Shown one piece after another: positions 8,801-63,150 of a stretch of DNA of 64,000 nucleotides (position 1 is the first letter of the stretch; each line of letters opens with the position of its first letter). The stretch is from positions 41,317-105,316 of the forward strand of contig NIVC01001529.1 of assembly GCA_002269645.1 (NCBI GenBank). Direction: 5' to 3'. Source of the stretch: Macrostomum lignano (Eukaryota). The notes under the pieces were generated by a model. The model saw only the letters and a program-made list of their open reading frames with translations. It had not been told where the DNA came from and searched no databases. The position numbers and the translations under genes are program-made.

Positions 8801-9757
8801 ACTAGAGAGAGGCTAGAGAGAGACTAGAGAGAGACTAGAGAAAGGCCAGAGAGAGACTAGAGAGAGGCCAGAGAGAGACTAGAGAAAGGCCAGAGAGAGA
8901 CTAGAGAGAGGCCAGAGAGAGACTTGAGAAAGGCCAGAGAGAGACTAGAGAGAGGCCAGTTAGCACTAGAGGGAGAACCAGTAGAAAACACTAGAATTGT
9001 GGGCGTTAGTTACTATCGAAAAGCACCTTACTGGCGACACGTATACAGCATCCTGATTAGACATTACACTGTTTCATCGTGCAGAAAGAGCTTCTAATTT
9101 ATTACTCTGAAATAATTAGTCTCAGAATTTTCCAAACGTGTTTACTATCGATAAGACTTTTATCGACTTGCTTGCACTTTTTCCTACTTGCACAGGAGGG
9201 CCAGTTCCTGGTGCGGCCCAGCAAGGCCTCAGCCTACTGCCTGTCCGTGTTTCACAGGGGCCGAGTTGTTCACCTGAAGATTGTGTGCGTTTCCAATCGC
9301 TTCGTGTTGGAGCAGCTGCTTAACGATGGCCAGGTGAGAATTGAGTGATTTTTAGCGCGATTTCTGTTTGTATTTTCTTCTGCACATGCGGAACCGAGAG
9401 GCAGTGAACTCAGTGAACTCACTCACTTCGCGTGTTCGCTGCATGTTCATTGGCACCTGAGTCAGTCAGCAACGCCTTCAGTCCTCTAGTGTCTTCACTT
9501 CAAGTTTATGATTTAAGCCAGTACCCGTATCGGTACCCGTATCGGTACCCGTATCGGTACCCGTATCGGTACCCGTATCGGTACCCGTATCGGTACCTGT
9601 ATCGGTACACGTTTCATTCTCTTTCGCATCGACCACAACTGCAAACGCATTGCAGACGTATGCCAATGTGCCCGATCTGATTGACTCCTTGGCCCTGAGC
9701 CAGCGAACTCTCACTCTGATGAACGGGGACTCCATCGTGCTCAGAATGATGGACTGA
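5893..9757 (+). CDS. Tandem SH2-domain protein with no catalytic domain, 6 exons, ~366 aa; one 1-nt deletion in exon 1
   Basis: Exons 5893..6131, 6707..6844, 6932..7041 (GC donor GCAAGT), 7354..7726, 9196..9333, 9656..9757; phases are consistent once 1 nt is restored near 5965. SH2-1: YFCNLTRTEAL/EGAYIVRPG..PYCIS..KHVKI/LFDSMSQLMDY. SH2-2: YYGDVRRDEAE/EGQFLVRPS..AYCLSV..VHLKI/TYANVPDLID, then a stop. Confidence 0.8.
7790..8960. repeat. GA-rich minisatellite (gagactagaga / gaggccaga units) in SH2-gene intron 4
   Basis: Seen directly. Confidence 0.95.
9521..9608. repeat. 12-bp tandem repeat gtacccgtatcg in SH2-gene intron 5
   Basis: About 7 copies, seen directly. Confidence 0.9.
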
Positions 9758-10438: not shown

Positions 10439-11641
10439 TCAAAGCAGTGAGCAGCAGCATTGCTGCGGATAGTCCGGAAAGTACACCCTCCGGTCCAGGC
10501 CATAGACAAAGAACTTGCCGCCCTGGTCCTCGAACTTCCAGTCCACTTCGGTGACAGGGGTGGCGAGCACCGTGTGTCGCATGGCCAGGATGCGACCCTC
10601 CTTGCTGTACTTCGCCGACATGGCGGGCAGCAACTCCTTGGAGAACTGGACGATGCACTGCTCGGGAAACTCGTTCAGCGGAGTCAAAACCTCGCCCTCG
10701 TCGCGGTACATCTCCTGACCTTTAACCTCTGACACCAGCTTGTCGGGCAGGGCGGTCTCCTCGTGGATCTTGTCCTCCTGGTGGGCCTCCCACTTGAAGT
10801 GATTTCGCACGCACCATTTGAGCTTCTTCTGCCCGGAGCAGGTCTTGCACTTGTACTTTCCCGAGCCGTGGCATCGGCCGCACGCGCTCTGGCCGCTGCC
10901 GCCGCAGGACCAGCACGGCACCTCGCCCTCGGGGCCGGCGACTAAGCCTCCACCATTGCAGCCGGAGCAGGGAAAGTGCGCCTGTCCCTTGCAGTCGCGG
11001 CAGCGGACCTGGCCCTTGCCCTTGCAGTACCAGCACTTGCGCACTGAGGCCGTGTGCGGCACCTCCGCTTTGCGCTTCTCCTCCTTCCACTGCTGCTTCG
11101 GCAGCATCTCCATGTCCCAGGGCATGGGCGCAGCTCCGGCCGCCGGCGGGTCCAGCTTGTCGCCCTTCTTGTAGCCCTGGCTGATCCACTTCACCTTGCG
11201 CACCTCGACGAACATCTCGCATCGGTAGATGAACGCGTTGGTGAGCTTCAAGTTGCTGATTGACATCCCCTCGGCGGCGCTGGAGCGCCAGCAGGCCTGC
11301 GAGTTGACGAACTTCAGCAGCGCTGCCCGCACCTCCGGTTCGTCCATTTTGCCGACGTCTTTGGGCAAATCAATCGGCGTCGCCTTAGCCTCCTTGGTGA
11401 CCGAGGCGGCCGGAGGCGGCAGGAAGCGGGTCTTCTTGCGCTCCTCGCCCTTCTTTCTGTAAGCTGGCGGCCCGATGATGCTCTCGTAGGCGGGCACCTT
11501 CTCGGCGCGGTACTTGTGGTCCTTGCCCTTGGCCGCCTTCTTGTTCATCTTCTTCTGCTCGTCTGAGCTGGACGACGCCAGCGAGGTCTCCGACGAGGAA
11601 TAGTCAGTGTCAATTTCTAAAACGCCGATCTTGAAGCCCAT
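10439..11641 (-). CDS. SSUH2: SSUH2 homolog (DnaJ-like CxxCxGxG zinc-finger repeats), single exon, ~400 aa
   Basis: Likely ATG at 11641 (MGFKIG). Motifs EVRAALLKFVNSQACW, VPHTASVRKCWYCKGKG, repeated CxxCxGxG, and FFVYGLDRRVYFPDYPQQCCCSLL match the SSUH2 family pattern; C-terminal CaaX-like CSLL. Confidence 0.85.
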   Translation of the reverse strand: MGFKIGVLEIDTDYSSSETSLASSSSDEQKKMNKKAAKGKDHKYRAEKVPAYESIIGPPAYRKKGEERKKTRFLPPPAASVTKEAKATPIDLPKDVGKMDEPEVRAALLKFVNSQACWRSSAAEGMSISNLKLTNAFIYRCEMFVEVRKVKWISQGYKKGDKLDPPAAGAAPMPWDMEMLPKQQWKEEKRKAEVPHTASVRKCWYCKGKGQVRCRDCKGQAHFPCSGCNGGGLVAGPEGEVPCWSCGGSGQSACGRCHGSGKYKCKTCSGQKKLKWCVRNHFKWEAHQEDKIHEETALPDKLVSEVKGQEMYRDEGEVLTPLNEFPEQCIVQFSKELLPAMSAKYSKEGRILAMRHTVLATPVTEVDWKFEDQGGKFFVYGLDRRVYFPDYPQQCCCSLL

Positions 11642-12457
11642 TGTGCTGCTTCGCGGTCGCTGGTGAGTTTGATTTGCCGATGCAAATGCGATGCGATGCC
11701 TAGTCTTATTTATATTGATGAAGCCACCGTCACCATGGCAGCAGCCACAGCGGGGGCAGAGATGGAGGTGGAGGCAGATAAGGCAGAGTGAGCAGTCTGA
11801 GAGTGAGCAGTCTGAATCAGAAAAGAATCTTACCGATGCGGCCTGCACAATGAAAGCTTTATCGTGCAGAGTAAACTTTGTTGCTATGGCGACGCCAACG
11901 CTCACTCTGCGAGATGCGCCTCCTTCTCTCCTCTCTCCCCTACACGCATGGTAAATATAGCAGAATACCTCTCTGCGGCTCTGCATTACCAAAGGCAGAC
12001 AAGATAAAGAGAAACATTTGGTTTCTTTTCGAGCGGCTGCAGTGTGCTCAAGTCTTTGAGACATGACAAACTAATCTTGCTTCGCTGTGATATTTTCATT
12101 CACTTGCGTCAATTAGGTTTCCCTAGCGCCTCTTCTATAATGAAGCTGCTGTGTCAACTGTTGGGAACTATTTGCAATTGCTATGGAACCCTGCGTTGCT
12201 AATGTCAACAAATTAGTCTGCCAGGCATTGCCGACAGGCAGCTGAGATGCTGGAATCCTAGTCTATTCAATTTTAAATTGTTCATTTGAGATTAGGCAGC
12301 ACACAATGGTTTATGCACTCTTCACGGACAAAGGGCGGAAATCCCCTCGGCCAGGTACGCCTGATTTAAGATATCTGGACTAGGAATAGAGATCTGAGTG
12401 TACGCTCCACTCCCAATCAGAGCTCTGTGACCGTTCCCTGATCTTAGCACGCCTCCC

Positions 12458-14029: not shown

Positions 14030-15091
14030 CTGCTCGGGTTTTTACGACCTCAAAGCTTGAGAAAAGAAGATGACAAAAGGTGTGAAAACACTGAAACTTA
14101 TATAGCCATTTTTCCTGCGTTTATTACTCCGCACAATGTGCCCCCTCCCCTCTCTGCCCCATTCGTAATTTTACACAACGGAGTCGTAAAAACCCGTAGA
14201 GAGCCGAAATCTCACTTGGCCCATTGGAGCACTAATCGCAGTGTTGAGGTTTTGTGAAGAGCTATTTCCAATAAGAAATGATAGAGTGCATCTGCACATG
14301 CAGCTTATTGAGCGCAAGCTGCATGTCTAAGCTTTGTGGGAGAGCAGCTTCTTTAGTTTAACCTTCCCCATCCCTCTCCCTAATCCGGCCACGTCCCTCA
14401 CTCCGTGTGACAGGCAGCTAAAATGAGACACGTTGAGTGCCTGCCCGCCACTCTGTCCAAAAAGATTCCAAATAAAGAAAGGCGATCTCAACAAAAGCAA
14501 AAAGGGAAAACACGACGACTGCATGCGAGCGCTACGCACTGGAATGGGGAAGGACTGCTGTGGGACCCCGCCAAAACTTGGTGAAGATGAGGCTGACCGC
14601 ACCGCTGAGTTCTAGGCATGACCTAAGATGTCCACCAGCTCGCGTGTATTTACACGACTGTGGTGTCTTATGGCAGAATTAGCGACAAGTAGCTAGAGCA
14701 AGGAGGCATGGAGCGTTCAGTGAGCGATTACCTACCTGTCTGTCTACAGTTCATTGGCTAGTCTACCTGCCCCTCCCATGCAGTTCCATTTCGAGAGCTC
14801 AGGGGGCAGAATCTGTCTAATTGGAGCAAGGCTGCGGGTGGAGAGAATGTGGAGCATGCAGCTCATTTTCGGGGCTCACAGGGGGATCGGAGCCGAGATG
14901 CCCGGTCAAATGAAAAGCCGTCAGCCCGGCTGGGGCACGCAGGCTGTCGATTTTTTGTTCTTCTGCTTCCGTAATGGAAGCCGTTTGGCGCTAATTATCT
15001 TCCAAAAGGTAGTCACCATTGGGACAGTCACAATTAGCCATCGTTCTTTAAAGTTGCTCGCGCAGGAGCAACCGTTGAGCTGAGCATCCGC

Positions 15092-23378
<8,287 letters not shown>

Positions 23379-25245: not shown

Positions 25246-25250
25246 CAATC

Positions 25251-25972
25251 TGTCTCAGTGTGTGTCTTAGCGTATTAGTGTCCGTCTTAGTGTCTTTTTT
25301 AGTGTCCATCTTAGTGTCTTAGTGTCCGTCTTAGTGTCTGTCTTATTGTCTGTCTTAGTGTCCGTCTTAGTGTCTCTCTTAGTGTCTGTCTTAGTTTCCG
25401 TCTTAGTGTCTGTCTTAGTGTCTGTCTCAGTGTCTTAGTGGCCGTCTTAGTGTCCGTATTAGTGTCTATCTTAGTGTCTCTTATTGTCTGTCTTAGTGTC
25501 TTNNNNNNNNNNNNNNNNNNNNNNNNNNNNNNNNNNNNNNNNNNNNNNNNNNNNNNNNNNNNNNNNNNNNNNNNNNNNNNNNNNNNNNNNNNNNNNNNNN
25601 NNNNNNNNNNNNNNNNNNNNNNNNNNNNNNNNNNNNNNNNNNNNNNNNNNNNNNNNNNNNNNNNNNNNNNNNNNNNNNNNNNNNNNNNNNNNNNNNNNNN
25701 NNNNNNNNNNNNNNNNNNNNNNNNNNNNNNNNNNNNNNNNNNNNNNNNNNNNNNNNNNNNNNNNNNNNNNNNNNNNNNNNNNNNNNNNNNNNNNNNNNNN
25801 NNNNNNNNNNNNNNNNNNNNNNNNNNNNNNNNNNNNNNNNNNNNNNNNNNNNNNNNNNNNNNNNNNNNNNNNNNNNNNNNNNNNNNNNNNNNNNNNNNNN
25901 NNNNNNNNNNNNNNNNNNNNNNNNNNNNNNNNNNNNNNNNNNNNNNNNNNNNNNNNNNNNNNNNNNNNNNNN
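25251..25972. repeat. ~12-bp tgtcttag-type array (25251..25502) running into an assembly gap of Ns (25503..25972)
   Basis: Seen directly. Confidence 0.95.
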
Positions 25973-26382
25973 GTATCAATCTCATCGATCTTCTCTTGCT
26001 TATGGAGACCTCAATCAAAAGAAAATCCATTGTTGAACTTCAGATCCAAAAACCACAGATTCATTGACCCAACTCAACAAAGACAAATCAAACTATTTTA
26101 TTTTCATACTGCTCTGTTTACTGTTGTGGCAAAGCTCACACGGAATGGGAATGGTTCTTATCTGGCTATGCACTGCAATATCAGGAGTTTTCCAGACTAA
26201 GAGCTGTTTTTGTCTTCCCCGGAGCGGCCTGTCTAGCATATTTCCTCCTTTCCTCCAGTGCTCTCAACTGGGCGGGGGGGATGCGCTTTCACAAGACCTA
26301 TAAATTGCCAGTGTTGGCCATTGTAAATAAAAGTACTTCAGTGTTAAGTGTCTTTGTCTCGGTAGAAATGTTAAGTGTTGCG

Positions 26383-26740
26383 GGGGCCGTAGCCCAGCGC
26401 GTAGCGCAGCTGCTCTGGTGTGCCGCGACCCAGGCTCGATTCCAAGTGCAGTCACATTAATTTGGGGCTGGATTGGAATCTTGGCTTGGCCTCTGCTTGT
26501 GCAATTAACGGCCTGAGAGCCAACCCCCAAGGCACAGTGAAGTGTACATGCCTAACGATAAAAATAAAGTTAGGGCCGCTGTACACTCCTGTGTGAGTGT
26601 GTGCCTGCGTAACGTATCCGCGCGCTTGTATGCCTGCTCAGGGGAGTCGGCGGAATGGGCAGTAAGGCCTCTCGCCGGGTTGTGTGCCTTTGTCGCTTAA
26701 GTGCGCCGGGGTGCACACAACCCCCCTGCCTCTAAAAAAA
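26383..26740 (+). mobile_element. tRNA-headed SINE, copy 2 (full length, A tail, target-site duplication)
   Basis: A/B-box-like head and A7 tail; 14-bp TSD with one mismatch: aaatgttaagtgtt (26366..26379) and aaatgttaactgtt (26738..26751). Confidence 0.9.
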
Positions 26741-27367
26741 TGTTAACTGTTAAAACCTCTATTGTTGTACAGTTTAGGTGTCATGAACCCCCTTATCACA
26801 TGAGCTCGCGAACTGGCCGTACTTTGTTATATCCGTAAAAACGGTACAAATTAAAATTTAGTACCTTTTAGCTACGGCACGAAGACTCCCCACGGCTAAA
26901 CCGTGGCCAGCACGTGGAATTTAATTGGAATTCCTGTGGACACGGCCGCCATTTTTATCATCTACTTCAGCTATCTAGTAGAACAACCGTCAGAACTACT
27001 CAAATTCGAAAGGGAACTTCGAAAATGTAAGCTCACATGCAGCTAAAAACGAGAAAAATCAAGAAGAAATTTAATAATAATTTCCGTCGCTTTCTAAGAA
27101 AGGTATGTCGCGTCGTTTAATTAAGAGTTCAACTGAGCAGCACGATGATTTGGTATTGTAAATAAACGATGTCTCAGTCTCGATATATTAATCATAAACG
27201 ATGCTAACACAAACGAAGCTCAATATATAATTATTAACGCATTGGGGTGGCGGGGCGCACGGGGTACGAAATCGGGGTGGTGGGTACACTGGATGTACAG
27301 TCAATATTTCAATAGTCAATCAGCTAGTCACTTAGTCATAAGTACAGCGGTAGAATCCAGCGCTGCC

Positions 27368-30309
27368 TCATCTCCCCCCTTCGAAACGGATAGGGGGTAC
27401 GCCTCGAGTTGACCGAGCTGGGTAGCGACGTACTGCTGTTTGACTTGGGCCTTGTTCGGATTCGGTGGGCGGGTCCCGACTGAGTTCGCCAGGCGGGTCC
27501 TGACCGAGTTCGCCAGGCGGGTCCTGACCGAGTTCGCCAGGCGGGTCCTGACCGAGTTCGCCAGGCGGGTCCTGACCGAGTTCGCCAGGCGGGTCCTGAC
27601 GAGTTCGCCAGGTGGGTCCTGACCGAGTTCGCCAGGCGGGTCCTGACCGAGGCCGCAGGGCGGATCCTGACCAAGCTCGATAGGTAGGCTCCGGCCGAAT
27701 CGGTTTGGCTGGACCTGGTCTTCTACAACGCGTCTCAGCTGATCCGCATGCGCCAGGGCGATGCGACCGCCTTGACGAGCGATTAGGGCGGTGTTGGTTC
27801 CCTTCTGCACGACGAACTCAGCTCGCTCCTGACGCTGCTGATCACCAGGCGTGTACCACAGGCTCGCTCCGATTGGTGTGCGCATGGTTATCGGGTTGCG
27901 TAATTGTCGACCCATGAGCTGTGACGGGCTCTGCTGGCGCCCAGCATGCGGCACACACCTGTAGTTTAGGAGTACCCTGGACAGGAACGACTCGTAGCTT
28001 TCGGACTGGTCCCACGCCGCAGATGCTCTCTTGATAGACTGGACCATCCGCTCGGCCAAGCCGTTAGACTGAGGGTGTCGCGGGTGAGTCTTGATGGCGC
28101 GGCAGCCGATTCTTTCCAGCCAGGCGATCAGATTGGCGTCGTGGAACTCGGCGGCGTTGTCGCTGACCAGCACATGAGGCACGCCGTTCCTAGCAAAGAC
28201 TGTCTGCAACACCCGCTTGACTGTCGCCGCGTCCCTGTTTTGCACTCGTACAGCCTCGGGCCAGCCGGACATAGCGTCAACTAGAATGAGCAGGAGTCCG
28301 ACCCTCGGCACACACGCATGATCCATGTGGACCCTGTGCCACGGCTTTTCCTCGTCGGGCCACCTGTGGACACTCTCCAGACCACTCGGGCGCAGTCTTG
28401 AGCAGGTCGGGCAACCTCGAACGTAGGCCTCGACGTCGCTGCAATAGCCGGGCCACCAGGCTGAGTTCTGTAGGCGAGCGCGCGTTGAGCCAGATCCCTG
28501 ATGCGTATCGTGCACAATTCCAAGAACGCCTTGTCGGAGGACAGCCGGGATGACTGGGCGATCACCGTAGCAGAGAACTCCGTCGTCGGTCGTGAGGGCG
28601 TGTCGGATGGCCTTGAAAGGTCGTTCGGCTGGCGAGCAGTTTGACCATCTGTTGACAGCAACGCGTTTCATGACATCAAGCAGCAGTCGGTCCCTTTGGG
28701 TCTCTGATTTCAGCTCCTGCCACGGGATCACAGCCTCGCCAGTCCAGTGAATGATGCTTTCCGGCCGCTCTGTCAGCTCGGTGTCGCTGTCACCTTCAAA
28801 ATCCAGCCGCGAAAGTGCATCTACTTGCGGAATCGATTCGCCTTTAGTGTAGACGATGTCATAGTCAAAGGCCATCAGTTTGATTGCCCATCGGAGAAGT
28901 CTCGCATTGGCAACCTTCGGCAGCTGGCGCCTCGACCCGAAGATGAATTCCAGCGGGCGATGATCCGTTCTGAGTGTGAAGCGCGACCCTAATAGGAACT
29001 GTTTCGCACGCTCCATAGCCCAAACGATCGCCAGCGCCTCTCTCTCGATGTTTGAATACCCTGCTTCTGCACTGCTCAGTTTCCGGCTGAAGTACATGAT
29101 CGGGTGGTTGCCCTGCGAGAGGATCGCTCCGATGGCTTTCTCGCTAGCATCGGTAGTGAGCGTGGTCTCTTTGTGCTTGTCATACGGCTTGATTACAGGC
29201 TCGCTGCAGAGCAGATCCTTGATTCGCGTGAAGGCAGCTTCCTGGGCTGGGCCCCAGACGAACTCAACGTTTCGGCCCCGGAGTTGATTGAGCGGTTCTA
29301 TGACGTCAGAGTAATTCTTAATAAACCTCCCGAAGAAGTTGGAAAGTCCTAGAAACGATTCGAGCTGCTTTCTGTCCTTCGGCGAGTTCACTGAGCGAAT
29401 TTTTCCGACCAGATTGGGGTCCGGGGTGATCCCGCTCGCGCTGATGCTGTAGCCGAGGAATCTGACCTCCGTTGCGCTTAGATTGGACTTTTCTAGGTTG
29501 ATCGTCATTCCAGCAGTTCGCATCGTCTGGAGAACGTGCTGCACTTTGCTCCTTAATTCGGCGTTGGACTTCGCTCCCAGGAGGACGTCATCCTGGTAGA
29601 CAATCTTGTTGCTGACATCCTGTAGGATTGTTTCCATGGCTTTCTGGAAAATGGCCGATGCAGATTTCAGCCCGGGAACCAGCCTTTTGTAGCGGAAGAG
29701 ACCCAAAGGTGTCGCGATTGTCGTCACCTCTCGGCTATCTTCATCGAGTTCGATTTGCAGGTAAGCATCAGAGAGATCCAGTTTAGCAAAGTGCGACATG
29801 CCTGCTATCTCAGAAAAAATCGTCTCCATTTCCGGGATCGGGTAGGTGTCATTGCATATCTGGTGATTGACACCAGCTTTAAAATCGGCACAGACACGAA
29901 CCTTTCCATTTGGCTTGAGCACGTTGACAATAGGCGATGCCCACTGGCTGCCTCCGGGAGGGACCGCCTCAATGATACCCTCGGATTCCATTCTTTGCAG
30001 CTCGCGCACCACCAAGTCTCTGAGGTGTAGCGGCACGGACCGGGCAGCACAATAGAACGCTTTGGCTCCTTCCACCAGTCTAATCTTAGCTTTGAACCCT
30101 TTGAGGCATCCGAGCTGTTGGACCGCGTTGATGGTGACCGCGTCTTCTTGGAGCTTTATGTTGTCCATGCCAAGCAGACCGTGCTTCTTCTCCGCGGCGG
30201 TGACAACCAGGCAATCGTGACGAATTTCGAGTTGGTCTCGAGTGACGCAGTGAATTCCCCGAGGCAGGCGATGCTGGAGCCGTCGAACTGCCGGAGAATT
30301 CTCCTGCAC
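27368..30309 (-). CDS. pol: Retrotransposon Pol (protease C-terminus, RT, RNase H, integrase); last segment in the -1 frame
   Basis: WASPIV, YQDD, TDAS, HHCC (HDTHQG..CPTC), DDE (HMDH, SDN, GLAER). After a 1-nt loss near 27600 the natural frame ends VRRYPARSTRGVPPIRFEGGR* at 27368. Confidence 0.93.
27475..27655. repeat. 24-bp tandem repeat (GQDPPGEL) within the integrase C-terminal tail
   Basis: ggtcctgaccgagttcgccaggcg, about 7 copies, one unit short by 1 nt. Confidence 0.9.
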
Positions 30310-31259
30310 TTGCGTAGGGTGGGCCGGCCCAGCTGGCGCCAGAGGTTCTGCGGAATCAGGCTGATCTCAGCTCCGGTGTTGACTTGCATTGAGATACCCT
30401 GGCCGTTGATTTTGATGGTCTTGAAGAGGCCCGTTTTAGCTCTGTTGGGGCTAAGAGTATACACGTCTGCTTCTTCTGCATCGACTGCGATTTCCTGATG
30501 GACAGCTCGTGATCTGCAGACAGCCGCAAAGTGATTTCTTTTTTGGCACTTGGAGCATTTTTTGCCGTAGGCTGGGCAGTTGCCCCTCAGGTGATTGGCG
30601 CCGCAGAACCCACATTTGATTGACGGCTGCGGCTTTGCAGGTGAGGAGACTCCCCTTTGTTGACCAGCGAAGGCGATGTCAGCAGGAGCCGGCGTGTTGT
30701 AGTCACGGATCTGCTCAAGCTGCTGCAAATTCTGCAAAATCCTGTCGAGTGGCGTTTCTCCATCTTCGTTTTGTAGGCGCTCCAAGATTCTTTTTTTGTG
30801 CTCTGAGGAGTTGAGGCCGTCAATTAATCGCATGGTAATCATGTCGTCCTCCTTTGTCTGCTTGCTGCCCAGCTTTTCAAACTCGCAGTGTGACGTAGCA
30901 GCCCTCAGCCTCCGGTAGTAGGCTATGACGGTCTCACCCGATTCCTGCTTCAAGCTGAGGAACCTGGTGCGTTCGGCAATTACAAGTGACTTTTTCGGCC
31001 GGATCGTCTCGTCAACTAGCTTTTTGATGTCATCGAATTTCATCTCATCCAGTTTTTTTGGTGCTGCCATTAGGGATAGCGTGCGAATTGCCTGAAGGCC
31101 GGCCTTAGATAAAAATAGGTCAGTTTTGTCCCGAGCCTCATCCGAGTCTGTTAGCTTTTTGATGCGCGCTGTGGCTGAGAGTCGCTGCATCCATGCTTCG
31201 GCCATGTCGGCGTCGTCCAAATTGAGTTCATGACTAAGCCTTTCTGCTTGCGACGCCAT
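30156..31259 (-). CDS. gag: Retrotransposon Gag with two CCHC knuckles, plus N-terminal part of the aspartic protease
   Basis: CGFCGANHLRGNC and CSKCQKRNHFAAVC; the protease motif reads VNTGA instead of VDTGA. Confidence 0.9.
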   Translation of the reverse strand: MASQAERLSHELNLDDADMAEAWMQRLSATARIKKLTDSDEARDKTDLFLSKAGLQAIRTLSLMAAPKKLDEMKFDDIKKLVDETIRPKKSLVIAERTRFLSLKQESGETVIAYYRRLRAATSHCEFEKLGSKQTKEDDMITMRLIDGLNSSEHKKRILERLQNEDGETPLDRILQNLQQLEQIRDYNTPAPADIAFAGQQRGVSSPAKPQPSIKCGFCGANHLRGNCPAYGKKCSKCQKRNHFAAVCRSRAVHQEIAVDAEEADVYTLSPNRAKTGLFKTIKINGQGISMQVNTGAEISLIPQNLWRQLGRPTLRKCRRILRQFDGSSIACLGEFTASLETNSKFVTIAWLSPPRRRSTVCLAWTT

Positions 31260-31874
31260 TGTCGCGTCGTTTAATTAAGAGTTCAACTGAGCAACACGAT
31301 GATTTGGTATTGTAAATAAACGATGTCTCAGTCTCGATATATTAATCATAAACGATGCTAACACAAACGAAGCTCAATATATAATTATTAACGCATTGGG
31401 GTGGCGGGGCGCACGGGGTACGAAATCGGGGTGGTGGGTACACTGGATGTACAGTCAATATTTCAATAGTCAATCAGCTAGTCACTTAGTCATAAGTACA
31501 GCGGTAGAATCCAGCGCTGCCTCAGGTAAGTTGCTCAATTTCTTGGTTAAATGCAGTAGCTAATTTACAAAGACCGAGTTTGGAATCATGATTAGAAAAT
31601 ATATTTACTGTGCCTATATGTAGCTATAATGCTGGTGCAAAGACCATTACTGGGAATTAGAAGTAAGACATTTCAAAGTTAAATTAGCTACTCAATAAAA
31701 TGCATTGAACATAGCTAAAATTATTAGATAAATATAGCCAAAAATGTGACAAACATGAATTATTATAATTATACACTGCAATAATGTTGCTAAAATGAGT
31801 CAGAATAAGCTTGATTTTGATTATTGCATTTGCATTTTTTAGGAATTATGAGCCTTCAAATATTTTCTAGTAGC

Positions 31875-32300
31875 CATGAGGTTCTCATAGAATTAGGGGT
31901 CATGAGGTGCTCATAGGAATAAGGATTGTCATGAGGTGCTCATAGGAATAAGGATTGTCATGAGGTGCTCATAGAATTAGGGGTCATGAGGTGCTCATAT
32001 TATTAGGGGTCATGAGGTGTTCATATTTTTAGGGGTCATGAGTGCTCATACGAATAAGGATTGTCATGAGGTGCTCATAGAATTAGGGGTCATGAGGTGC
32101 TCAGAATTAGAGATTGTCCTAAGGTGCTCATATTATTAGGGGTCATGTGGTGTTCATATTTTTAGGGTCATGAGTGCTCATATGACTATTGGGATTGTCA
32201 TGAGGTACTCATAGGATTAATTGGGGCTGTCTTAAGGTCCTCATAGGATTAAAGAGGTTGTAATGAGGTACTCATGGGATCAGGGGATTGTCATGAGATG
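31875..32300. repeat. Degenerate ~28-bp repeat with gtcatgaggtgctcata core
   Basis: Seen directly. Confidence 0.8.
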
Positions 32301-32426
32301 CTCATAGGAGGAGACTGAGCCATCAAAGTGTTCCATAAGCATGTGTTCCACCCCTTCAAATCGTATTGAAGCTCAGATCTCCCAACCCATACCTCAACCT
32401 CAGAACTGAGACCTGAGACCTCTGAA

Positions 32427-34414
32427 ATGCCCGAGAATCGGCCACCAGCACCGCCTGACTGCAACCTGCTGCCGCGGCCGCGGGGACGCCTCAGCTTCCT
32501 GTCCGAGGAGCAGCTGAAGAAGTTGCAGCAGCTGTACAAAGCCTCCGGCCTTCGGATGCGGACGTTCATCGTCTACTGTCTCATCCTCATCATGGCCAGC
32601 TCAGTCTCCCGGGAGAATCTCAGCTTGGACACTCGCCTGAGCTCATTTAGCAGCAGCCAGCTGGACGCGGCCACCCGGCAACGCTTGGCTCTTGAAGGAT
32701 TTCACAGCGACGGGGCTGGTGGCGCTCGCTGCTTCCACTGCGGCGCCAAGCGGCACTCGAACCAAGGACGACATGAGGATGCAGTTAATTGCACTCTGCA
32801 GAGGCTGCTGCGGCTTCTCAACCTATCAGAGCCAGCAGGTTTGGCCTCATTTATGCTCGAGCATTCCGAGCTCAGCAGATCCGCAGAGTTCCTCAGAAGG
32901 CTGAGAGAAGTTCTCAGACACCCCACTGTCGCCTTCGCCGAGTCTTTCGGCTACACTCCGGACGACTTGGCACTGGCTCTGATCGGGCACGGGTACGTCA
33001 CATTCGCTGGAAGCAGGCAGCGGCAGAGGGACATCAGCCAGCTTCGGGCGGGAGATCTAATCAGCCTGGCTCAGCAGCAGGAGGCTCCGCACGGCGATGC
33101 GAACACGCTGCCCTGGAGAATCACCGGGTTGCTGACTGCGGTCAGTCAGGGCCAGCGGCAGCAGGTCAAGGACAACACGCCCCAGCCGGTGGAGACCCGA
33201 CGAGATCCAATTGGCCCGTCGGCGGTACAGCAGCGAGAGACTCGGTGAGGTTCCAAAGATAAAGCCGGGGTCCAAGCGAGGGAGAGAGAGGGAAAGAGCT
33301 TGCAAACATGATGGCTAGCCAATCACAAGCTTCCGCTGGGCGACGGGGATGGAATGGGTTGGAAGAGCAGTTATATACAATAGCAGAGATAGAATACACA
33401 GCAGCAGAGATAGAATACACAGCAGCAGAGATAGAATACACTGCAGCAGAGATAGAATACACAGCAGCAGAGAAAGAATACACAGCAGCAGAGATAGAAT
33501 ACACTGCAGCAGAGATAGAATACACAGCAGCAGAGATAGAATACACAGCAGCAGAGATAGAATACACAGCAGCAGAGATAGAATACACAGCAGCAGAGAT
33601 AGAATACACAGCAGCAGAGATAGAATACACAGCAGCAGAGATAGAATACACAGCAGCAGAGATAGAATACACAGCAGCAGAGATAGAATACACAGCAGCA
33701 GAGATAGAATACACAGCAGCAGAGATAGAATACACAGCAGCAGAGATAGAATACACAGCAGCAGAGATAGAATACACTGCAGCAGAGATAGAATACACAG
33801 CAGCAGAGATAGAATACACAGCAGCAGAGATAGAATACACAGCAGCAGAGATAGAATACACAGCAGCAGAGATAGAATACACAGCAGCAGAGATAGAATA
33901 CACAGCAGCAGAGATAGAATACACTGCAGCAGAGATAGAATACACAGCAGCAGAGATAGAATACACAGCAGCAGAGATAGAATACACAGCAGCAGAGATA
34001 GAATACACAGCAGCAGAGATAGAATACACAGCAGCAGAGATAGAATACACAGCAGCAGAGATAGAATACACTGCAGCAGAGATATAATACACAGCATCAA
34101 ATAGTGGCAACCACTGAGTCAAATCCACCCACAGCGACCCGAAGCCGCCGCCACAGCCTCAGCGGCAGTCCCAGCCGGCAGCTCAGCCAAGGTCAGTCTC
34201 TGCCAGAGTGGAGGACAGGCCAGGCCAGCAGCCAGTGGAGGCTCCTGCGGATTCCAACAGCCCGATGTGCATTCTGTGCCAACAGCGTTGGAGGAATCGA
34301 GTATTGCTACCTTGCACTCATCTCGTGGCCTGCAATGTCTGCTTGCAGAACAGGACGAGCTGTCCCAGCTGTGGCGAATCTATCTTGGCCGCCATGAACG
34401 GCCTAATCTCCTAG
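32427..34414 (+). CDS. Divergent IAP-like protein (degenerate BIR, UBA-like segment, C3HC4 RING), 2 coding exons, ~365 aa
   Basis: Exons 32427..33244 and 34135..34414 (phase 2, GTGAGG / cccacag). BIR-like LALEGFHSDGAGGARCFHC..H..C; UBA-like HPTVAFAESFGY; IAP-type RING CILC..LLPCTHLVACNVC..CPSC at the C-terminus. Confidence 0.75.
33380..34095. repeat. 21-bp minisatellite gcagcagagatagaatacaca in the IAP-like intron
   Basis: About 33 copies, lying between donor 33245 and acceptor 34134. Confidence 0.95.
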
Positions 34415-34464: not shown

Positions 34465-35539
34465 TCAGCTGCAGGGTGCAGGATGCAGCGAGGAGGCGTT
34501 GCCGCCCAATTTGCTAACCCCTGGCGACCACGGGCAGCTATAGTGCTGCGGTGTCGCGCAGGGAGTTCCAGTGGTGCCGGTGTCCTCAACGCGGCCCCTC
34601 TCCGGAGAGTCCAGGACGTGGATGGTCGCTCGCCCGGTAGCCCTTAGGTAGCGGACGAGCTGGCAGAGATTCTCGGGCCTGAAAACGTCTGAAGGGCCTG
34701 AAGAGGTCCCGGTTTTTAAACCGAGATGGGTGAGCCTGTCCTGAGTAAAGGCGGGGCATTCACAGATGAAGTGCTCCGCATTCTCGACACCGGAGAGACA
34801 GAAGGGGCATTCCTCACTACAGATTTGTCCCTGACGGTAACGATGGCTGGCAAAACAGCCATGACACGAGAGAGCCATGGTCACCGCCCTGATGTCCCTG
34901 CGGTTGAGTCCAAGCAGGGCCTGTGCAAGGCTGAGGAAGGACAGGGGACGCCGCGCGGGATTGCCGGCAGTCGGGGGCATTAACTCACCTTTCCCTGTGC
35001 ATTGAAGCCACCCACTGGTTGATCCGAGTATTGACAACGGCGGTGGGGTGGGGCTACGGGCAGGGGACCGGCCAACTCGTTGCCAGGGTGGCCCGAGTTC
35101 CCGGCGATCCACCTTAGGGACACCTTGTTGTAGGCGCCTAAGCGGTTGAGCTGCCCGATGCAGTCGAGGACTGTACGCGAGCAGGTGGTGGTGCACTCAA
35201 GGGCGTGGATCGCCACTTGACTGTCCGAGTGGAGGATAATTTCCTTCCCCAGATGCGCTGCAGATTGTACATCTCCGTGGCACAGGAGCTGATGGCGAGA
35301 ACTTCGTTCTGGAAGACGGTGGAGCAGGTGCCGGTGTGCTGGGAGAAGGTCGCCACAGTTCTCCCTCCAGACACGATGCAGTAGCCGTAGCCAGAGGCGG
35401 AGTTGATTTGGGACCCGTCAGTGAAGCAGTGGATTTCACGGGATTTCCTGTTGTCCCTTGCTTCATGACGTGGTGGAATGCTGGTTTTGAATTTGAGCCG
35501 AGGGCAGAGCGTGGACGGGATTCCGTCCGAGAGGGTCAT
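34465..35539 (-). mobile_element. 5'-truncated, frameshifted non-LTR retrotransposon fragment with RNase H and a C-terminal Cys/His motif (LOA/R1/I-type architecture)
   Basis: Split across three frames: CFTDGSQ..TVFQNEV; AIHAL..LRWIAGNSGHPGNELA; LLGLNRRDIRAVTMALSCHG..CPFC..ENAEHFICECPAF. Confidence 0.85.
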
Positions 35540-39149: not shown

Positions 39150-41289
39150 CTACATCAGCTGCTGATGATGCTGTTGCTGCTGCTGTTGTTGTTGCTGCGG
39201 ATGCTGGTAGGAGGATGAAGGCAGCGTCAGACGCTGAATAGTGATGGGAGCGTTAATCAATTGCGGCTGCTGCATTGGCTGGCCAGAGTGACTGCTGATG
39301 ATTCTCTGGAATGTGGGCGAGTTGAGATAGATGAGATATACGATCCAGTGGATCAGGATGCCTAGGTAATTAGGCCACTGGATACCCAAATAATAGGGGC
39401 AACTGACACCCAGATACTCAGGAGACCTGACACCCAGATACTCAGGAGACCTGACACCCAAATACTCAGGAGACCTGACACCCAGATACTCAGGAGACCT
39501 GACACCCGGATACTCAGGAGACCTGACACCCAGATACTCAGGAGACCTGAAACCCAAATACTCAGGAGACCTGACACACAGATACTCAGGAGACCTGACA
39601 CCCAGATACTCAGGAGACCGGTCAACCAGACATTCTGGGTGTCTGAGTAGAAGCAGTAGCCCGGACAGCCAGATACTCAGGAGGCCGGACACCCAGGTTC
39701 TCAGGAGACCGGACACCCAGATAGAGACCGGACAACCAGGTGCTCAGGAGACCTGACACCCAGATACTCAGGAGACCTGACACCCAGATACTCAGGAGAC
39801 CTGAAACCCAAATACTCAGGAGACCTGACACCCGGATACTCAGAAGACCTGACACCCGGATACTCAGGAGACCTGAAACCCAAATACTCAGGAGACCTGA
39901 CACCCAAATACTCAGGAGACCTGAAACCCAAATACTCAGGAGACCTGACACCCGGATACTCAGGAGACCTGACACCCAGATACTCAGGAGACCGGACACC
40001 CAGATACTCAGGAAACCGGACACCCAGATACTCAGTAGACCGGACACCCAGATACTCAAGACACCTCACCCCGGACGGTGCTCACCATGCTGCCAGGAGC
40101 AGCGGGCTGGAAGCTGGCAGGATCCATAATGCGGCTGATCTTGGCAGGCGGCGGGCCAGCGGTGGCTACAGGGTTGATGACCATCGTCTGAGGGCGAGAA
40201 GGTTCGGGAGGGTCGGGCTGTTTACAATGCGACGCTCTAGTTGTCTGGTTGACATTGGAGAGTCACCAATTATTGCCAAGCCAATTACCAAGATTAACAT
40301 TCATAAATTAGACAAAAAACTGAATAGAAAAACGAAATTAAAAAAATTATAGCTGAACCGATAAAAAAGGACGCTTTGGAGTACGTACAAGTAGATAAGA
40401 TGACAATTATTTTGAACACTGAGTAGAAGCAGCACATCTCGCCTTAAAATTTTGAAGAGAAATGTGGCATACTAGACATTCGAAATTTCATTTTCGGTGG
40501 TCACGTGACCCGCTGGATGACGCTCTCTTTGTCAATGATTGTAGCTATCTAGATAACTAGTAAAGCTCTTACATTCCAGCGGCCCAGGCTCGATTCCCAG
40601 TGCAGTCACATTAATCTGGCCGGGGCTGAATTGGAATCTCGGCTTGGCTCTGCTCGTGCAATTAACGACCTTGAGGGCCAACCCCCAAGGCACAGTGAAG
40701 TGTACATGCCTAACGATAAATAAAGTTAGGGCCGCTGTACACTCCTGTGTGAGTGTGTGCCTGTGAGTATGACTGCGTACGTATCCTTGCGCTTGTGTGC
40801 CTGCTCAGGGGAGTCGGCGGAATGGGCAGTAATGCCTCTCGCAGGTTGTGTGACAATGTCGCCTAAAGTGCGTTAGGGTGCACACAACCTCCAACTTTAA
40901 CTAAAAAGGCCACTCAGCAAATTTATAAGACGCTGCCCAATGTCTAGAAGGTGTGGCACTGAAATTAATTGAAACGGAAAAGTACCATCAACACCAACTA
41001 TAATTGATGCAGTGCATAATTAAAGAGAAAGAGCCTTATTAATATAAATTCAGCTCATATCGATAAGATCGACGCACCAAGACACAGATTCATGAATTAA
41101 CTGATTAAACAAAGACAACCGATCCAACACCAAAACAGTATTTTCAAAATTAGGTGAGCCAAATTAATTTAAGATCTCAATTTAAGGTCTCAAAGCGTGG
41201 CTCTGTACTCAATGTCTTCGTATCTGTTTATCTGTGTCTCATAGTCTTTTTGCTGTCTGTCTGTCTGTCTGTCTGTCTTTCTGTCTGTG

Positions 41290-41354
<65 letters not shown>

Positions 41355-41377
41355 TTCTGTCTGTCTGTCTGTCTGTG

Positions 41378-41454
<77 letters not shown>

Positions 41455-41457
41455 TAG

Positions 41458-41490
<33 letters not shown>

Positions 41491-41493
41491 TAG

Positions 41494-41554
<61 letters not shown>

Positions 41555-41565
41555 TTCTGTCTGTG

Positions 41566-41624
<59 letters not shown>

Positions 41625-41635
41625 GTGTCTGTCTT

Positions 41636-41712
<77 letters not shown>

Positions 41713-44700
41713 GTGTCTGTCTGTCTTTCTGTCTGTCTGTGTGTCTGTCTGTCTCGCCTATCCAGGTTACCTTAGCAGCGTGGGGTTGATGAGGCAAAGG
41801 CGGATGCGGCAGCTGAGGCTGCTGGTAATAGCCATAGCGGCTATTGAAATCGCAGCCAGTTCCATAGCCCGGAGGCCCGGCAGCAGCAGGAAAGGCATTT
41901 CGCTGCTGATAATACTGCTGCTGCTGCTGCTGATAGCTCTGTGGCTATTATAGAATTATTTTTCATAGGATAATTAAGACATTAAATAATTTCATTGAAG
42001 GAGAAAAAATTGATTAACTACATATAGTAAAATAGATCTATTGACGCACTACTTTAACACGACATAGCATGGAACACCAAAAGTACGACATACGTTCTTT
42101 TTAAAAAATAAACAAATATAAAATAATGAGTCTAGGTAAGCGATTTGCTAAGATTTTATCAACTAAAGCTAAGCACTAATTGCAACGAGAATGTTTCACA
42201 TTTTCTGAATTGTCATCACGCAGCGGATATGGCTAATACTCGTACGTGTTTGCAATCATATAAATACGAGTAATTATGGGTAGATTACTGAACTAAGACA
42301 CCAATACTTAATCACTGAAGGGATTGCTAATCTGTGCTCCTAATTTCTGAATGGATTGCTAATCCGTGCTCCTAATTGCATAATGGATTGCTAATCTGTG
42401 CTTCTGATTGCATAATGGATTGCTAATCTGTGCTCCTAATTGCATAATGGATTGCTAATCTGCGCTCCTAATTGCATAATGGATTGCTAATCTGTGCTCC
42501 TAATTGCATAATGGATTGCTAATCTGTGCTCCTAATTGCATAATGGATTGCTAATCAGTGCTCCTAATTTCTGAATGGATTGCTAATCTGTGCTCCTGAT
42601 TGCATAATGGATTGCTAATCTGTGCTCCTAATTGCATAATGGATTGCTAATCTGTGCTCCTGATTGCATAATGGATTGCTAATCTGTGCTCCTAATTGCA
42701 TAATGGATTGCTAATCTGCGCTCCTAATTGCATAATGGATTGCTAATCTGTGCTCCTAATTGCATAATGGATTGCTAATCTGTGCTCCTAATTGCATAAT
42801 GGATTGCTAATCTGTGCTCCTAATTGCATAATGGATTGCTAATCTGTGCTCCTAATTGCATAATGGATTGCTAATTTTGGCTCCGAAACTTCAAACTAAT
42901 TAAGTGAATCTCAGCAGCTATAAAAAGCGAATATCAAATTTGAGTAAAACTCTATCTCTGCTACTTATATGCAAGCAGTAGTAAACAGAGGTCAAGAAGA
43001 GGACTGATTCAAAGCCCAACTCACAGCAGACTGCATCGGGCGCATGGTGTACACCGAGGTTGTTGCTACGCCGGCAGGGAATTTACCCGCCGGCTGGGAC
43101 ACAATCTGGTGCCTGTACTGCGGCTGCTGATGGTGCTGATGGTGCGGGTTGGAAGGATGAGACGGAGGCATGTACACCATGACGTGCGGCTGAGTCTGCG
43201 GCTGCGGCGGCTGCGCCCTGACTACAGGCGGCTGCTGCAGCTGCGGCGCCGGCTGTCTCTGCTGAAACCGAGTCCGCATGTCGCGCAAGAACTCATCCTG
43301 ATCGGCCGGGATGGAGGCCACAATGCTTCCTAGCTGGGCGTCGTAGCGCGCCACCAGGCAGCGCGCCAGCTGGGTGGCGCCGGGCGCTCCGGCCGGCCGA
43401 GAGGTCTTTAAATCGCAGAAAATCAGAGCCATCTGCAGTGGGGAGGGGTTGGTGGTGCAGGGTGCTGAGGGCGAGTGATGCAGAGCGATAACAGGTGGCA
43501 TAGATCGGTGCCGACAGCAAGCAATCAGTTTGGATTAGCAGTTATTTTTTGGATTAGCGGTAGCGTTGAACTCAGATGTACGACTTGGATCTCTTATCCT
43601 CCATCTACCATCTCTTAACCGCTATCTACCATCTCTTAACCGCTATCTACCATCAGTTGCCCTCCATCTACCATCTCTTACTCTCTATCTACCATCTCTT
43701 ACCCTCTATCTACCATCTCTTATACCCTCCATCTACCATCTCTTACCCTCTATCTACCATATCTTATACCCTCCATCTACCATCTCTTATACCCTCCATC
43801 TACCATCTCTTACCTCCATCTACCATCATTTGCCCTCCATCTACAATCTCTTACCCTCCATCTACCATCTCTTACCCTCCATCTACCATCTCTTACCCTC
43901 CATCTACCATCTCTTACCCTCTATCTACCATCTCTTACCCTCCATCTACCATCATTTGCCCTCCATCTACCATCATTTGATCTCAGTCTATTATCTCTTA
44001 CCCTCTATCTACCATCATTTGCCCTCCATCTACCATCATTTGATCTCAGTCTACCATCTCTTACCCCTCCATCTACCATCTCTTATACCCTCCATCTACC
44101 ATCTCTTATACCCTCCATCTACCATCATTTGCCCTCTATCTACCATCTCTTATCATTTGTCTACTTTTCCTAACATTATGATGTACGTCAATAGAACACA
44201 AAAATAACTCAAATAATTATGGGATGCTGTCACACCGAAAGTACGGACAGAGTTATAAAATATAAAATCCAACTCCTTCATTTCAACATCACTAAGCAAG
44301 GTGACGTTATAAATTTATAACCCAGAGCCAACCATGACAGATTCGAATACGGCAAGATAAACAGGGAAAAAATTACAACGGAATTGGCCTCATAATCAAG
44401 TTCCTAAAATATAGCTCAGTGCTCCCTATCAGCACATCACCAAATTAGAATTATGGAACGCTAAATTAATTCGCAACAACCGCACACAACACTAATCAAA
44501 TCAAAGACTACTTAAAGTAGCAGTAAACCGAGCTGTTTACGCAAAAAATACACTACACGCACTCATGCACACGCTCACAAAGGGTGCACAGCGGCCCTTG
44601 ACTACTAGAATAACTAGATGAGCCACTCAGCACATTTGCGTGTAAGCTACTTTCAGTTCAGTAGTAAGTTAAACTGAAGCATTTTAATGTATTTTTAAAG

Positions 44701-62798: not shown

Positions 62799-63150
62799 GG
62801 GGCCTAGCCCAGCAGTAGCACAGCTGCTCTAGTGTGCCAACAACCCAGGCCAATTCACATTAATTTGGAGCTGAATTGGAATCTCAGATTGGCTCTGCTT
62901 ATGCAATTAATGGCCTTGAGAGCCAACCCCCAAGGCGCAGTGAAGTGTACATGCCTAACGATAATATAAAGTTAGGGCCACTATAGACTCCTGTGTAAGT
63001 ATGTGTCTGTGTACATATCCATGTGCTTGTATGCCTACTCAGGGAAGTCGGCGCTAAGTGGAATGGGCAATAATGCCTCTTGCCAGTTGTGTTCCTATGT
63101 CGCTTAAAGTGCGCCAGGGTACACAACCCCCCCCTGCCTCTAATAAAAAA
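62799..63150 (+). mobile_element. SINE copy 4 (full length, heavily C>T/G>A mutated), 12-bp TSD
   Basis: TSD aggctaccatac at 62784..62795 and 63150..63161; colinear with copy 2. Confidence 0.88.

Follow-up and report, generated by a model that had tools for sequence, protein, structure and literature searches.

The question raised by this locus is whether a retrotransposon of Macrostomum lignano has landed in a 5' splice site that the host uses and has left that site in working order, or in a sequence that only resembles one. The DNA concerned is a stretch of 64,000 nucleotides from contig NIVC01001529.1 of GenBank assembly GCA_002269645.1 (positions 41,317 to 105,316 of the forward strand), referred to as the window. 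It contains a complete long terminal repeat (LTR) retrotransposon copy of the Ty3/mdg4 (gypsy) type on the minus strand at 27106-31524 (4,419 bp) and, downstream on the plus strand at 32427-34414, a gene with a BIR-like region and a RING domain. A preliminary description proposed that the element sits exactly in the donor of a non-coding first exon of this gene. We find that the insertion target is a perfect donor consensus, and we infer that the donor 9-mer at 27102 is somewhat more probably not a used exon end than a used one. In the course of events that we favor, the element integrated antisense to an unannotated BIR-like/RING gene, whose start codon lay ~0.9 kb downstream before the insertion; its target, AAAG|GTAAGT, a perfect 5' splice-site consensus, would be a hit by chance or by target bias in the 5' flank or outron; and the gene would start, or be trans-spliced, near its ATG.

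The junction sequences can be read directly. Copies of GGTA stand on each side of the LTR pair, at 27102-27105 and 31525-31528, and joining 27105 to 31529 in silico gives ...CTTTCTAAGAAAG|GTAAGTTGCTC. The empty site, i.e., the sequence left after removal of the element and one copy of the duplication, is AAAG|GTAAGT, which matches the donor consensus MAG|GTRAGT at 9/9 positions, as the preliminary description had claimed. Its account of the two present junctions was likewise accurate: the left junction reads AAG|GTATGT (8/9), and the right junction (31524-31531, plus strand), composed of the terminal A of the LTR, the GGTA duplication and AGT, reads CCTCAG|GTAAGT, of which CAG|GTAAGT matches the consensus at 9/9 positions. 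The left target-site duplication (TSD; 27101-27105, plus strand) is GGTA, or AGGTA if it is 5 bp long; in the latter case the copies are at 27101-27105 and 31524-31528 and the LTR-end A at 31524 is counted twice. All five comparator insertions that give a TSD have a duplication of 5 bp, in line with the longer reading.

Donors at both junctions are a geometric by-product and say nothing about function. The ends of an LTR element are TG...CA whichever strand is read, and next to a duplicated target that includes GGTA such ends always produce G|GTATG at the left junction and CAG|GTA at the right one, in either orientation of the element. The right junction is in addition a juxtaposed acceptor and donor, and this acceptor-plus-donor composite is a point that the preliminary description did not contain. 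The span from the GT at 27103 to the AG at 31525 is exactly the element plus one TSD (4,423 nt), and its removal would regenerate AAAG|GTAAGT; the polypyrimidine tract before the composite is weak (8/14 pyrimidines), and the CAG|GTAAGT itself is exact. Motifs of this kind are found in the window at chance frequency: AGGTAAGT is seen twice against 1.68 expected, MAGGTRAGT three times against 2.23 expected, and the YY1-like GCCGCCATTTT (26945-26955), allowing up to one mismatch, once against 0.91 expected. The YY1-like motif is thus present at 26945 as first reported, but we rejected it as promoter evidence because of this chance frequency. That an insertion point should coincide with a donor 9-mer has a low prior probability, which we estimate at roughly 1e-5 to 1e-4 per insertion, and the coincidence was spotted post hoc.

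The identification of the insertion as an LTR retrotransposon antisense to the downstream open reading frame (ORF) is confirmed by its LTR pair, its domain order and its location on the minus strand. In element orientation the 5' LTR occupies 31260-31524 and the 3' LTR 27106-27370 (both on the minus strand); these direct repeats of 265 bp start with TGT, end with CA and agree at 264/265 positions, one short of full identity. A sequence resembling a primer-binding site (PBS), TGGCGTCGCAAGCAG (31244-31258, minus strand), begins 1 nt past the 5' LTR, its span overlapping the start codon of gag, and a polypurine tract, GAAGGGGGGAGA (27371-27382, minus strand), abuts the 3' LTR and has an analogous tract in locus L003. 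The gag-pol reading frame (27328-31259, minus strand) encodes two CX2CX4HX4C knuckles, protease, reverse transcriptase, RNase H and integrase, the pol domains following one another in the order PF13975 (protease), PF00078 (reverse transcriptase), PF17917/17919 (RNase H), PF17921 (integrase zinc-binding) and PF00665 (integrase core). At its 3' end the frame reads on into the LTR via a 24-bp tandem array (27468-27679, 8.9 copies) that separates the integrase region from the polypurine tract and is also present in the copy at locus L001. The window copy falls short of intact coding capacity: its frame has no internal stops but is broken by one frameshift, whereas gag-pol is a single uninterrupted ORF in the L001 copy and in most relatives. 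Long-read assemblies often contain single-base indel errors, and the frameshift, which may be an assembly error, consequently needs confirmation. No canonical heat-shock element was noticed in the LTR by eye, without a formal scan.

Paired LTRs with TG...CA ends, a TSD of 4-6 bp, a PBS-like sequence with a polypurine tract, and an integrase placed last are the features of Ty3/mdg4 elements that the window copy displays. The LTR elements of M. lignano have been catalogued into 137 families, mostly Ty3/mdg4 elements of the Mag clade, to which 78 of the families belong, and the catalogue lists 1,928 copies (PMC12801592). Our element resembles the Ty3/mdg4 members of that catalogue in its TG...CA LTRs, PBS, polypurine tract, TSD, protease-RT-RNase H-integrase order and compact 4.4-kb size (PMC12801592), and it may be a Mag element, a placement taken solely from the literature prior for M. 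lignano families. Its best protein match is an annotated M. lignano protein with 99% identity, followed by many further M. lignano relatives, the intact ones having a single gag-pol ORF. A 13-nt core of the PBS, TGGCGTCGCAAGC (window 31246-31258, minus strand), is conserved in place in five related families of M. lignano; it is identical, again overlapping the gag start codon, at L001 10002, L003 3002, L004 2520, L005 3502 and L006 3502, and the families that share it have pol proteins only 51-68% identical to that of the window element. We conclude that the element is a young, compact (4.4 kb) Ty3/mdg4-type LTR retrotransposon of M. lignano with a single gag-pol frame broken once, and that it is a further copy of an already known type of retrotransposon.

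Besides the window copy, the ~170 kb examined contain a single other copy of the same family, at L001 9736-14155 (contig NIVC01000032.1, GCA_002269645.1). It is 98.96% identical to the window copy, from which it differs by 43 substitutions and three 1-nt indels, and its TSD is CTATT, with junctions CTATT|TG and CA|CTATT that lack GT and AG. The flanks of this copy (9300-9735 and 14161-14500) belong to a long host ORF that begins MSRRSSS... and continues into an SQE-repeat region; the element has the same orientation as the ORF that it interrupts and looks like a gene-disrupting insertion. Related elements at L005 3236-7574, L007 3202-7665 and L009 3501-7403 lie antisense within the spans of annotated host genes, of which one encodes an SH3 domain and the others products of 1,273 aa and 302 aa. 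The LTR pairs of the L005 and L007 elements are 100% identical, which marks these two as very recent insertions. Another related element, in locus L004 (1-2518 and 4275-6793), is arranged in tandem, a 2.5-kb block recurring 4,275 bp downstream with 99.8% identity; this suggests an internal-LTR-internal-LTR array in which an LTR would be shared.

The gene downstream of the insertion had been described as IAP-like, and the resemblance stands while membership in the BIR family does not. Exact protein look-ups of the downstream ORF (and of the pol ORF) gave no match, and the 273-codon ORF at 32427 has neither a Pfam match nor a word-index homology match. A full HMMER scan with this ORF recovered a family composed entirely of M. 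lignano proteins, among them P0122, P0128, P0127 and P0123, and multi-BIR proteins were matched as well; P0122 and P0128 combine a weak BIR-like region with a C-terminal RING. With tblastn the BIR-like part maps to 32490-33197 and the RING to 34253-34411. The gene is read as a coding exon at 32427-33244, a putative intron at 33245-34134 (GTGAGG...CACAG, phase-compatible, probably 890 nt) and a RING exon at 34135-34414, all on the plus strand. The conceptual spliced product has 365 aa and carries a C-terminal RING, a feature of IAP proteins, above the Pfam threshold (PF13920, E=3.1e-9, 36.9 bits against a cut-off of 27), but the product has no Pfam BIR match even at E up to 10 and its matches to BIR structures in the PDB are weak (E 0.2-0.7, aa 68-111). 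Three conserved cysteines, corresponding to BIR zinc ligands, align with those of paralogs that have weak BIR matches, and the spacing of the zinc ligands is shortened.

The gene appears to be intact, its BIR-like exon being open and its RING exon undamaged. The closest paralog, P0122 (L002 8001-9014), has a single-exon coding sequence that is uninterrupted at the position of the putative intron of the window gene, and this intron, which contains a 21-bp unit repeated 34 times with 98% identity (33382-34096), may be a recent gain or insertion. Gene models overlapping repeats were removed from the GenBank annotation of M. lignano (PMC5730564), so the absence of the gene from protein databases and annotation is no evidence of silence. 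Between the insertion site and the ATG lie tandem arrays with units of 26 to 31 bp (31875-32309). Directly downstream of the stop codon, at 34465-35539 on the minus strand, there are ORFs that faintly match the zinc-binding region of reverse transcriptases (E=0.9) and may represent a decayed non-LTR element cutting into the 3' flank of the gene.

The strongest competitor of an unused 9-mer, to which we assign somewhat less than an even chance, is that a short untranslated first exon of the BIR-like/RING gene would end at 27102 and that the element would lie within intron 1. The candidate exon is provisionally placed at 26940-27102 (plus strand) and includes the YY1-like motif. The insertion would have enlarged intron 1 from 878 nt to 5,301 nt, and the intron would be removed from the rebuilt donor AAG|GTATGT, either in one step to the acceptor at 32403 or in two steps via the composite CCTCAG|GTAAGT, which would regenerate AAAG|GTAAGT. 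The donor consensus is perfect before the insertion and still 8/9 after it, and it lies on the strand of the gene. The best acceptor candidate, CCTCAACCTCAG| (32392-32403, plus strand), is situated 23 nt before the ATG, with 10/14 pyrimidines and A as the following base. The pre-insertion distance fits the mean intron length of the species, 1.1 kb (PMC5730564). The apparent integrity of the gene and the presence of CACGTG and several short palindromes just upstream are also consistent with a functional first exon.

Several observations argue in the opposite direction or are neutral. The candidate exon contains two upstream ATGs, and the frame begun by the second, 22 codons long, would end 2 codons beyond the best acceptor. 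The acceptor CCTCAACCTCAG|A could equally serve spliced-leader (SL) trans-splicing, which is common in M. lignano; since 38.8% of the genes of this species are SL trans-spliced (PMC5730564), the existence of a cis-spliced exon further upstream does not follow from an acceptor ahead of the ATG. The coding sequence of the closest paralog consists of a single exon, as noted above, and no similarity was found between the candidate exon and the upstream region of that paralog. On its host-sense strand the element carries AATAAA at 27161 (59 nt past the left junction), 29320 and 31315, together with five further donor-like sites matching 8/9 positions and about a dozen acceptor-like sites, and the tract at the right junction is the weak one described earlier. 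In view of the same internal signals, the suggestion that the element could be nearly invisible to its host is optimistic and unsupported as stated.

Our preference for an unused donor is slight. It is supported by the chance rate of donor 9-mers and of the YY1-like motif in this repeat-rich window, and by the landing sites of two other elements: the related family in L005 sits in CAG|GTAAAC, a motif antisense to the only annotated host gene of that locus, and the same-family copy in L001 sits in CTATT. The L005 case implies that the lineage can hit donor-like sequence that is not the donor of the gene concerned. Weighing against this preference are the 9/9 match on the strand of the RING gene, the distance of 878 nt (pre-insertion) to a decent acceptor, near the mean intron length of the species, and a rough estimate that 40-55% of perfect 9-mers in the gene-dense M. 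lignano genome could be real donors; the missing annotation of the RING gene carries no weight. A rough Bayesian calculation, which used the motif rates of the window, the numbers of introns given in PMC5730564 and donor frequencies generic to metazoans, put the chance that a 9-mer at such a position is a real donor near one half. We lowered this value to somewhat under one half because of the antisense donor-like site occupied by the L005 element.

A further explanation, compatible with both a used and an unused donor, concerns the enzyme rather than the host: the integrase of this retrotransposon lineage might be biased towards AGGTA(A)-like targets and thereby enrich donor-like landing sites whether or not these are used. 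The preliminary description had proposed a preference for GGTA. Duplications were compared in element orientation, in which that of the window is TACC(T), i.e., (A)GGTA on the plus strand; the comparators giving a TSD were L001 (CTATT, inside the long host ORF), L003 (GGATT), L005 (CAGGT), L006 (AAAAA) and L007 (TCTAC). None was obtained from L004, where the array runs off the locus, from L008, where the 5' LTR is truncated, or from L009, which has no LTR pair. A GGTA-specific integrase finds no support, as stated, in this collection. The alternative suggestion, survival of donor-type insertions only, is likewise unsupported as stated, given that the other copy of the family interrupts a long host ORF.

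What the comparison of the duplications does contain is a weak hint of overlap with AGGTAA. The TSDs of two of the six mapped insertions overlap this hexamer (AGGTA|AGT in the window and CAGGT|AAAC in L005), and L007 has AGGTAAAC 3 nt past its TSD. The background frequency of AGGTAA is 1.2e-4 per position per strand; the probability of at least two occurrences among the five non-ascertained 55-nt sites is 0.0014, and that of at least one TSD overlap among five is ~0.012 as estimated from the background rate. These statistics are, however, post hoc, with flexible windows and n=5. The window, L005 and L007 elements represent different families, with pol proteins 43-53% identical to that of the window family; CTATT is the TSD of the one other copy of the latter, the duplications GGATT, AAAAA and TCTAC share nothing with AGGTA, and the orientation of the motif relative to the element is opposite in the window and in L005. 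We therefore regard a bias of this kind as unlikely, and the AGGTAA overlap as a lead and not a result.

Less probable still, at a slim chance, is a combination in which the lineage would prefer AG|GTA(A) and an insertion into a real donor site would form a nested GT...AG unit that recursive or twin-intron splicing takes out precisely, leaving the element nearly silent and introner-like. Introners resemble the present case in that the target duplication supplies splice-site bases at the boundary of the element, and differ in being short, high-copy, mostly DNA elements that form introns in many genes (PMC9860276, PMC12130899). The only other copy of our family departs from the introner pattern, interrupting an ORF with neither GT nor AG at its junctions. 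In the stwintrons of fungi a GT...AG unit is likewise nested at the donor of an outer intron and consecutive excisions are needed, but the small internal intron sits between +1 and +2 (PMC12403724), whereas the hypothetical unit in the window is a 4.4-kb retrotransposon between exon position -1 and intron position +1. The ratchet points in long introns of Drosophila (PMC8605326) share with the right junction the acceptor-plus-donor form, which would regenerate a 5' splice site, but the tract in the window is weak (8/14) and the motif was made by the insertion rather than conserved. Ratchet points, stwintrons and introners are analogies for the hypothetical two-step reading. We know of no use of recursive splicing in M. 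lignano.

The closest functional precedent is the retrotransposon 412 in Drosophila. According to Fridell, Pret and Searles (1990), as cited in PMC4691828, an antisense copy of 412 in the first exon of vermilion is spliced from the pre-mRNA, and an upstream consensus 5' splice site protects transcripts that carry such insertions. The likeness would consist of the position of an LTR retrotransposon, antisense and close to the 5' end of the transcript of a host gene, and of removal by splicing as the proposed route of tolerance; the difference is that splicing in vermilion is documented, imprecise and uses cryptic LTR sites (PMC4691828, as cited there), whereas in the window it would be precise, would use a rebuilt donor and the composite, and is hypothetical.

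An assembly artefact, in which the element or its junctions were mis-joined and there was no real insertion, is very improbable: an N gap in the window ends at 25973 and three single-base indels separate the copy from that in L001, but both junctions are clean LTR ends with a matching duplication, and the flanks join into continuous unique sequence. Other identities considered for the site were rejected. An SL RNA gene or another known RNA at the donor was discarded with Rfam empty across the window and no tRNA called by ARAGORN. The flanks are not a miniature inverted-repeat transposable element or another repeat, as they share no inverted repeats and neither the rest of the window nor ~100 kb from other loci of M. 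lignano contains a copy of them. A homology search with an ammonium-transporter exon of the window, aimed at this locus itself or a homeologous one, and at an empty site, gave no match.

The remainder of the window is rich in repeats. A repeat resembling a short interspersed element (SINE), with a tRNA-like head and an A-rich tail, lies 360 bp upstream of the insertion site (26380-26741, plus strand). This SINE-like repeat of ~360 bp, with the head GGGGCCGTAGCCCAGCG...GGCTCGATTCC, is also found in the window at 21136-21426, 40579-40892 and 62799-63148 and at L002 16795-17009; the four window copies are ~80-86% identical, and ARAGORN calls a tRNA in 0/4. A short-period tandem satellite at 41223-41754 is shared with L002 (771-1046 and 4869-5515) at 92-97% identity and has a more diverged relative at 25249-25501. 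Other contigs of M. lignano contain tandem and SINE-like repeats that are 72-96% identical to those of the window. The N run, at ~25500-25973 and ~1.1 kb upstream of the candidate exon, is an assembly gap and indicates that the window comes from a scaffolded assembly. The ammonium-transporter exon (20901-21122, plus strand; PF00909, E=2e-19) has no near-identical protein in the searched collection. Ahead of it lies a GC-rich tandem array of 1.5 kb (~19.3-20.9 kb), in which several frames are open on each of the two strands. A 541-aa ORF at 10439-12064 (minus strand), with a cysteine-rich region of CxxCxGxG-type repeats and no significant Pfam match, may be a real host gene.

The preliminary description is partly supported by these results: the identity given to the gene and the presence of an antisense LTR element are upheld, the use of the splice site stands at somewhat less than an even chance, and the integrase preference is unsupported as stated. 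As it stands, the locus is an ordinary young insertion beside a lineage-specific RING gene, combined with a striking, unverified sequence coincidence. If the hinted bias towards AGGTA targets held genome-wide, this Ty3/mdg4 lineage would be unusual in its integration specificity. If the 9-mer were a used donor, the locus would be a clean natural case in which a splice site survived the insertion of a retrotransposon, and the insertion itself would have created a site resembling a ratchet point. Such a case would bear on how mobile DNA comes to be tolerated and to accumulate in introns, and on the origin of new recursive sites.

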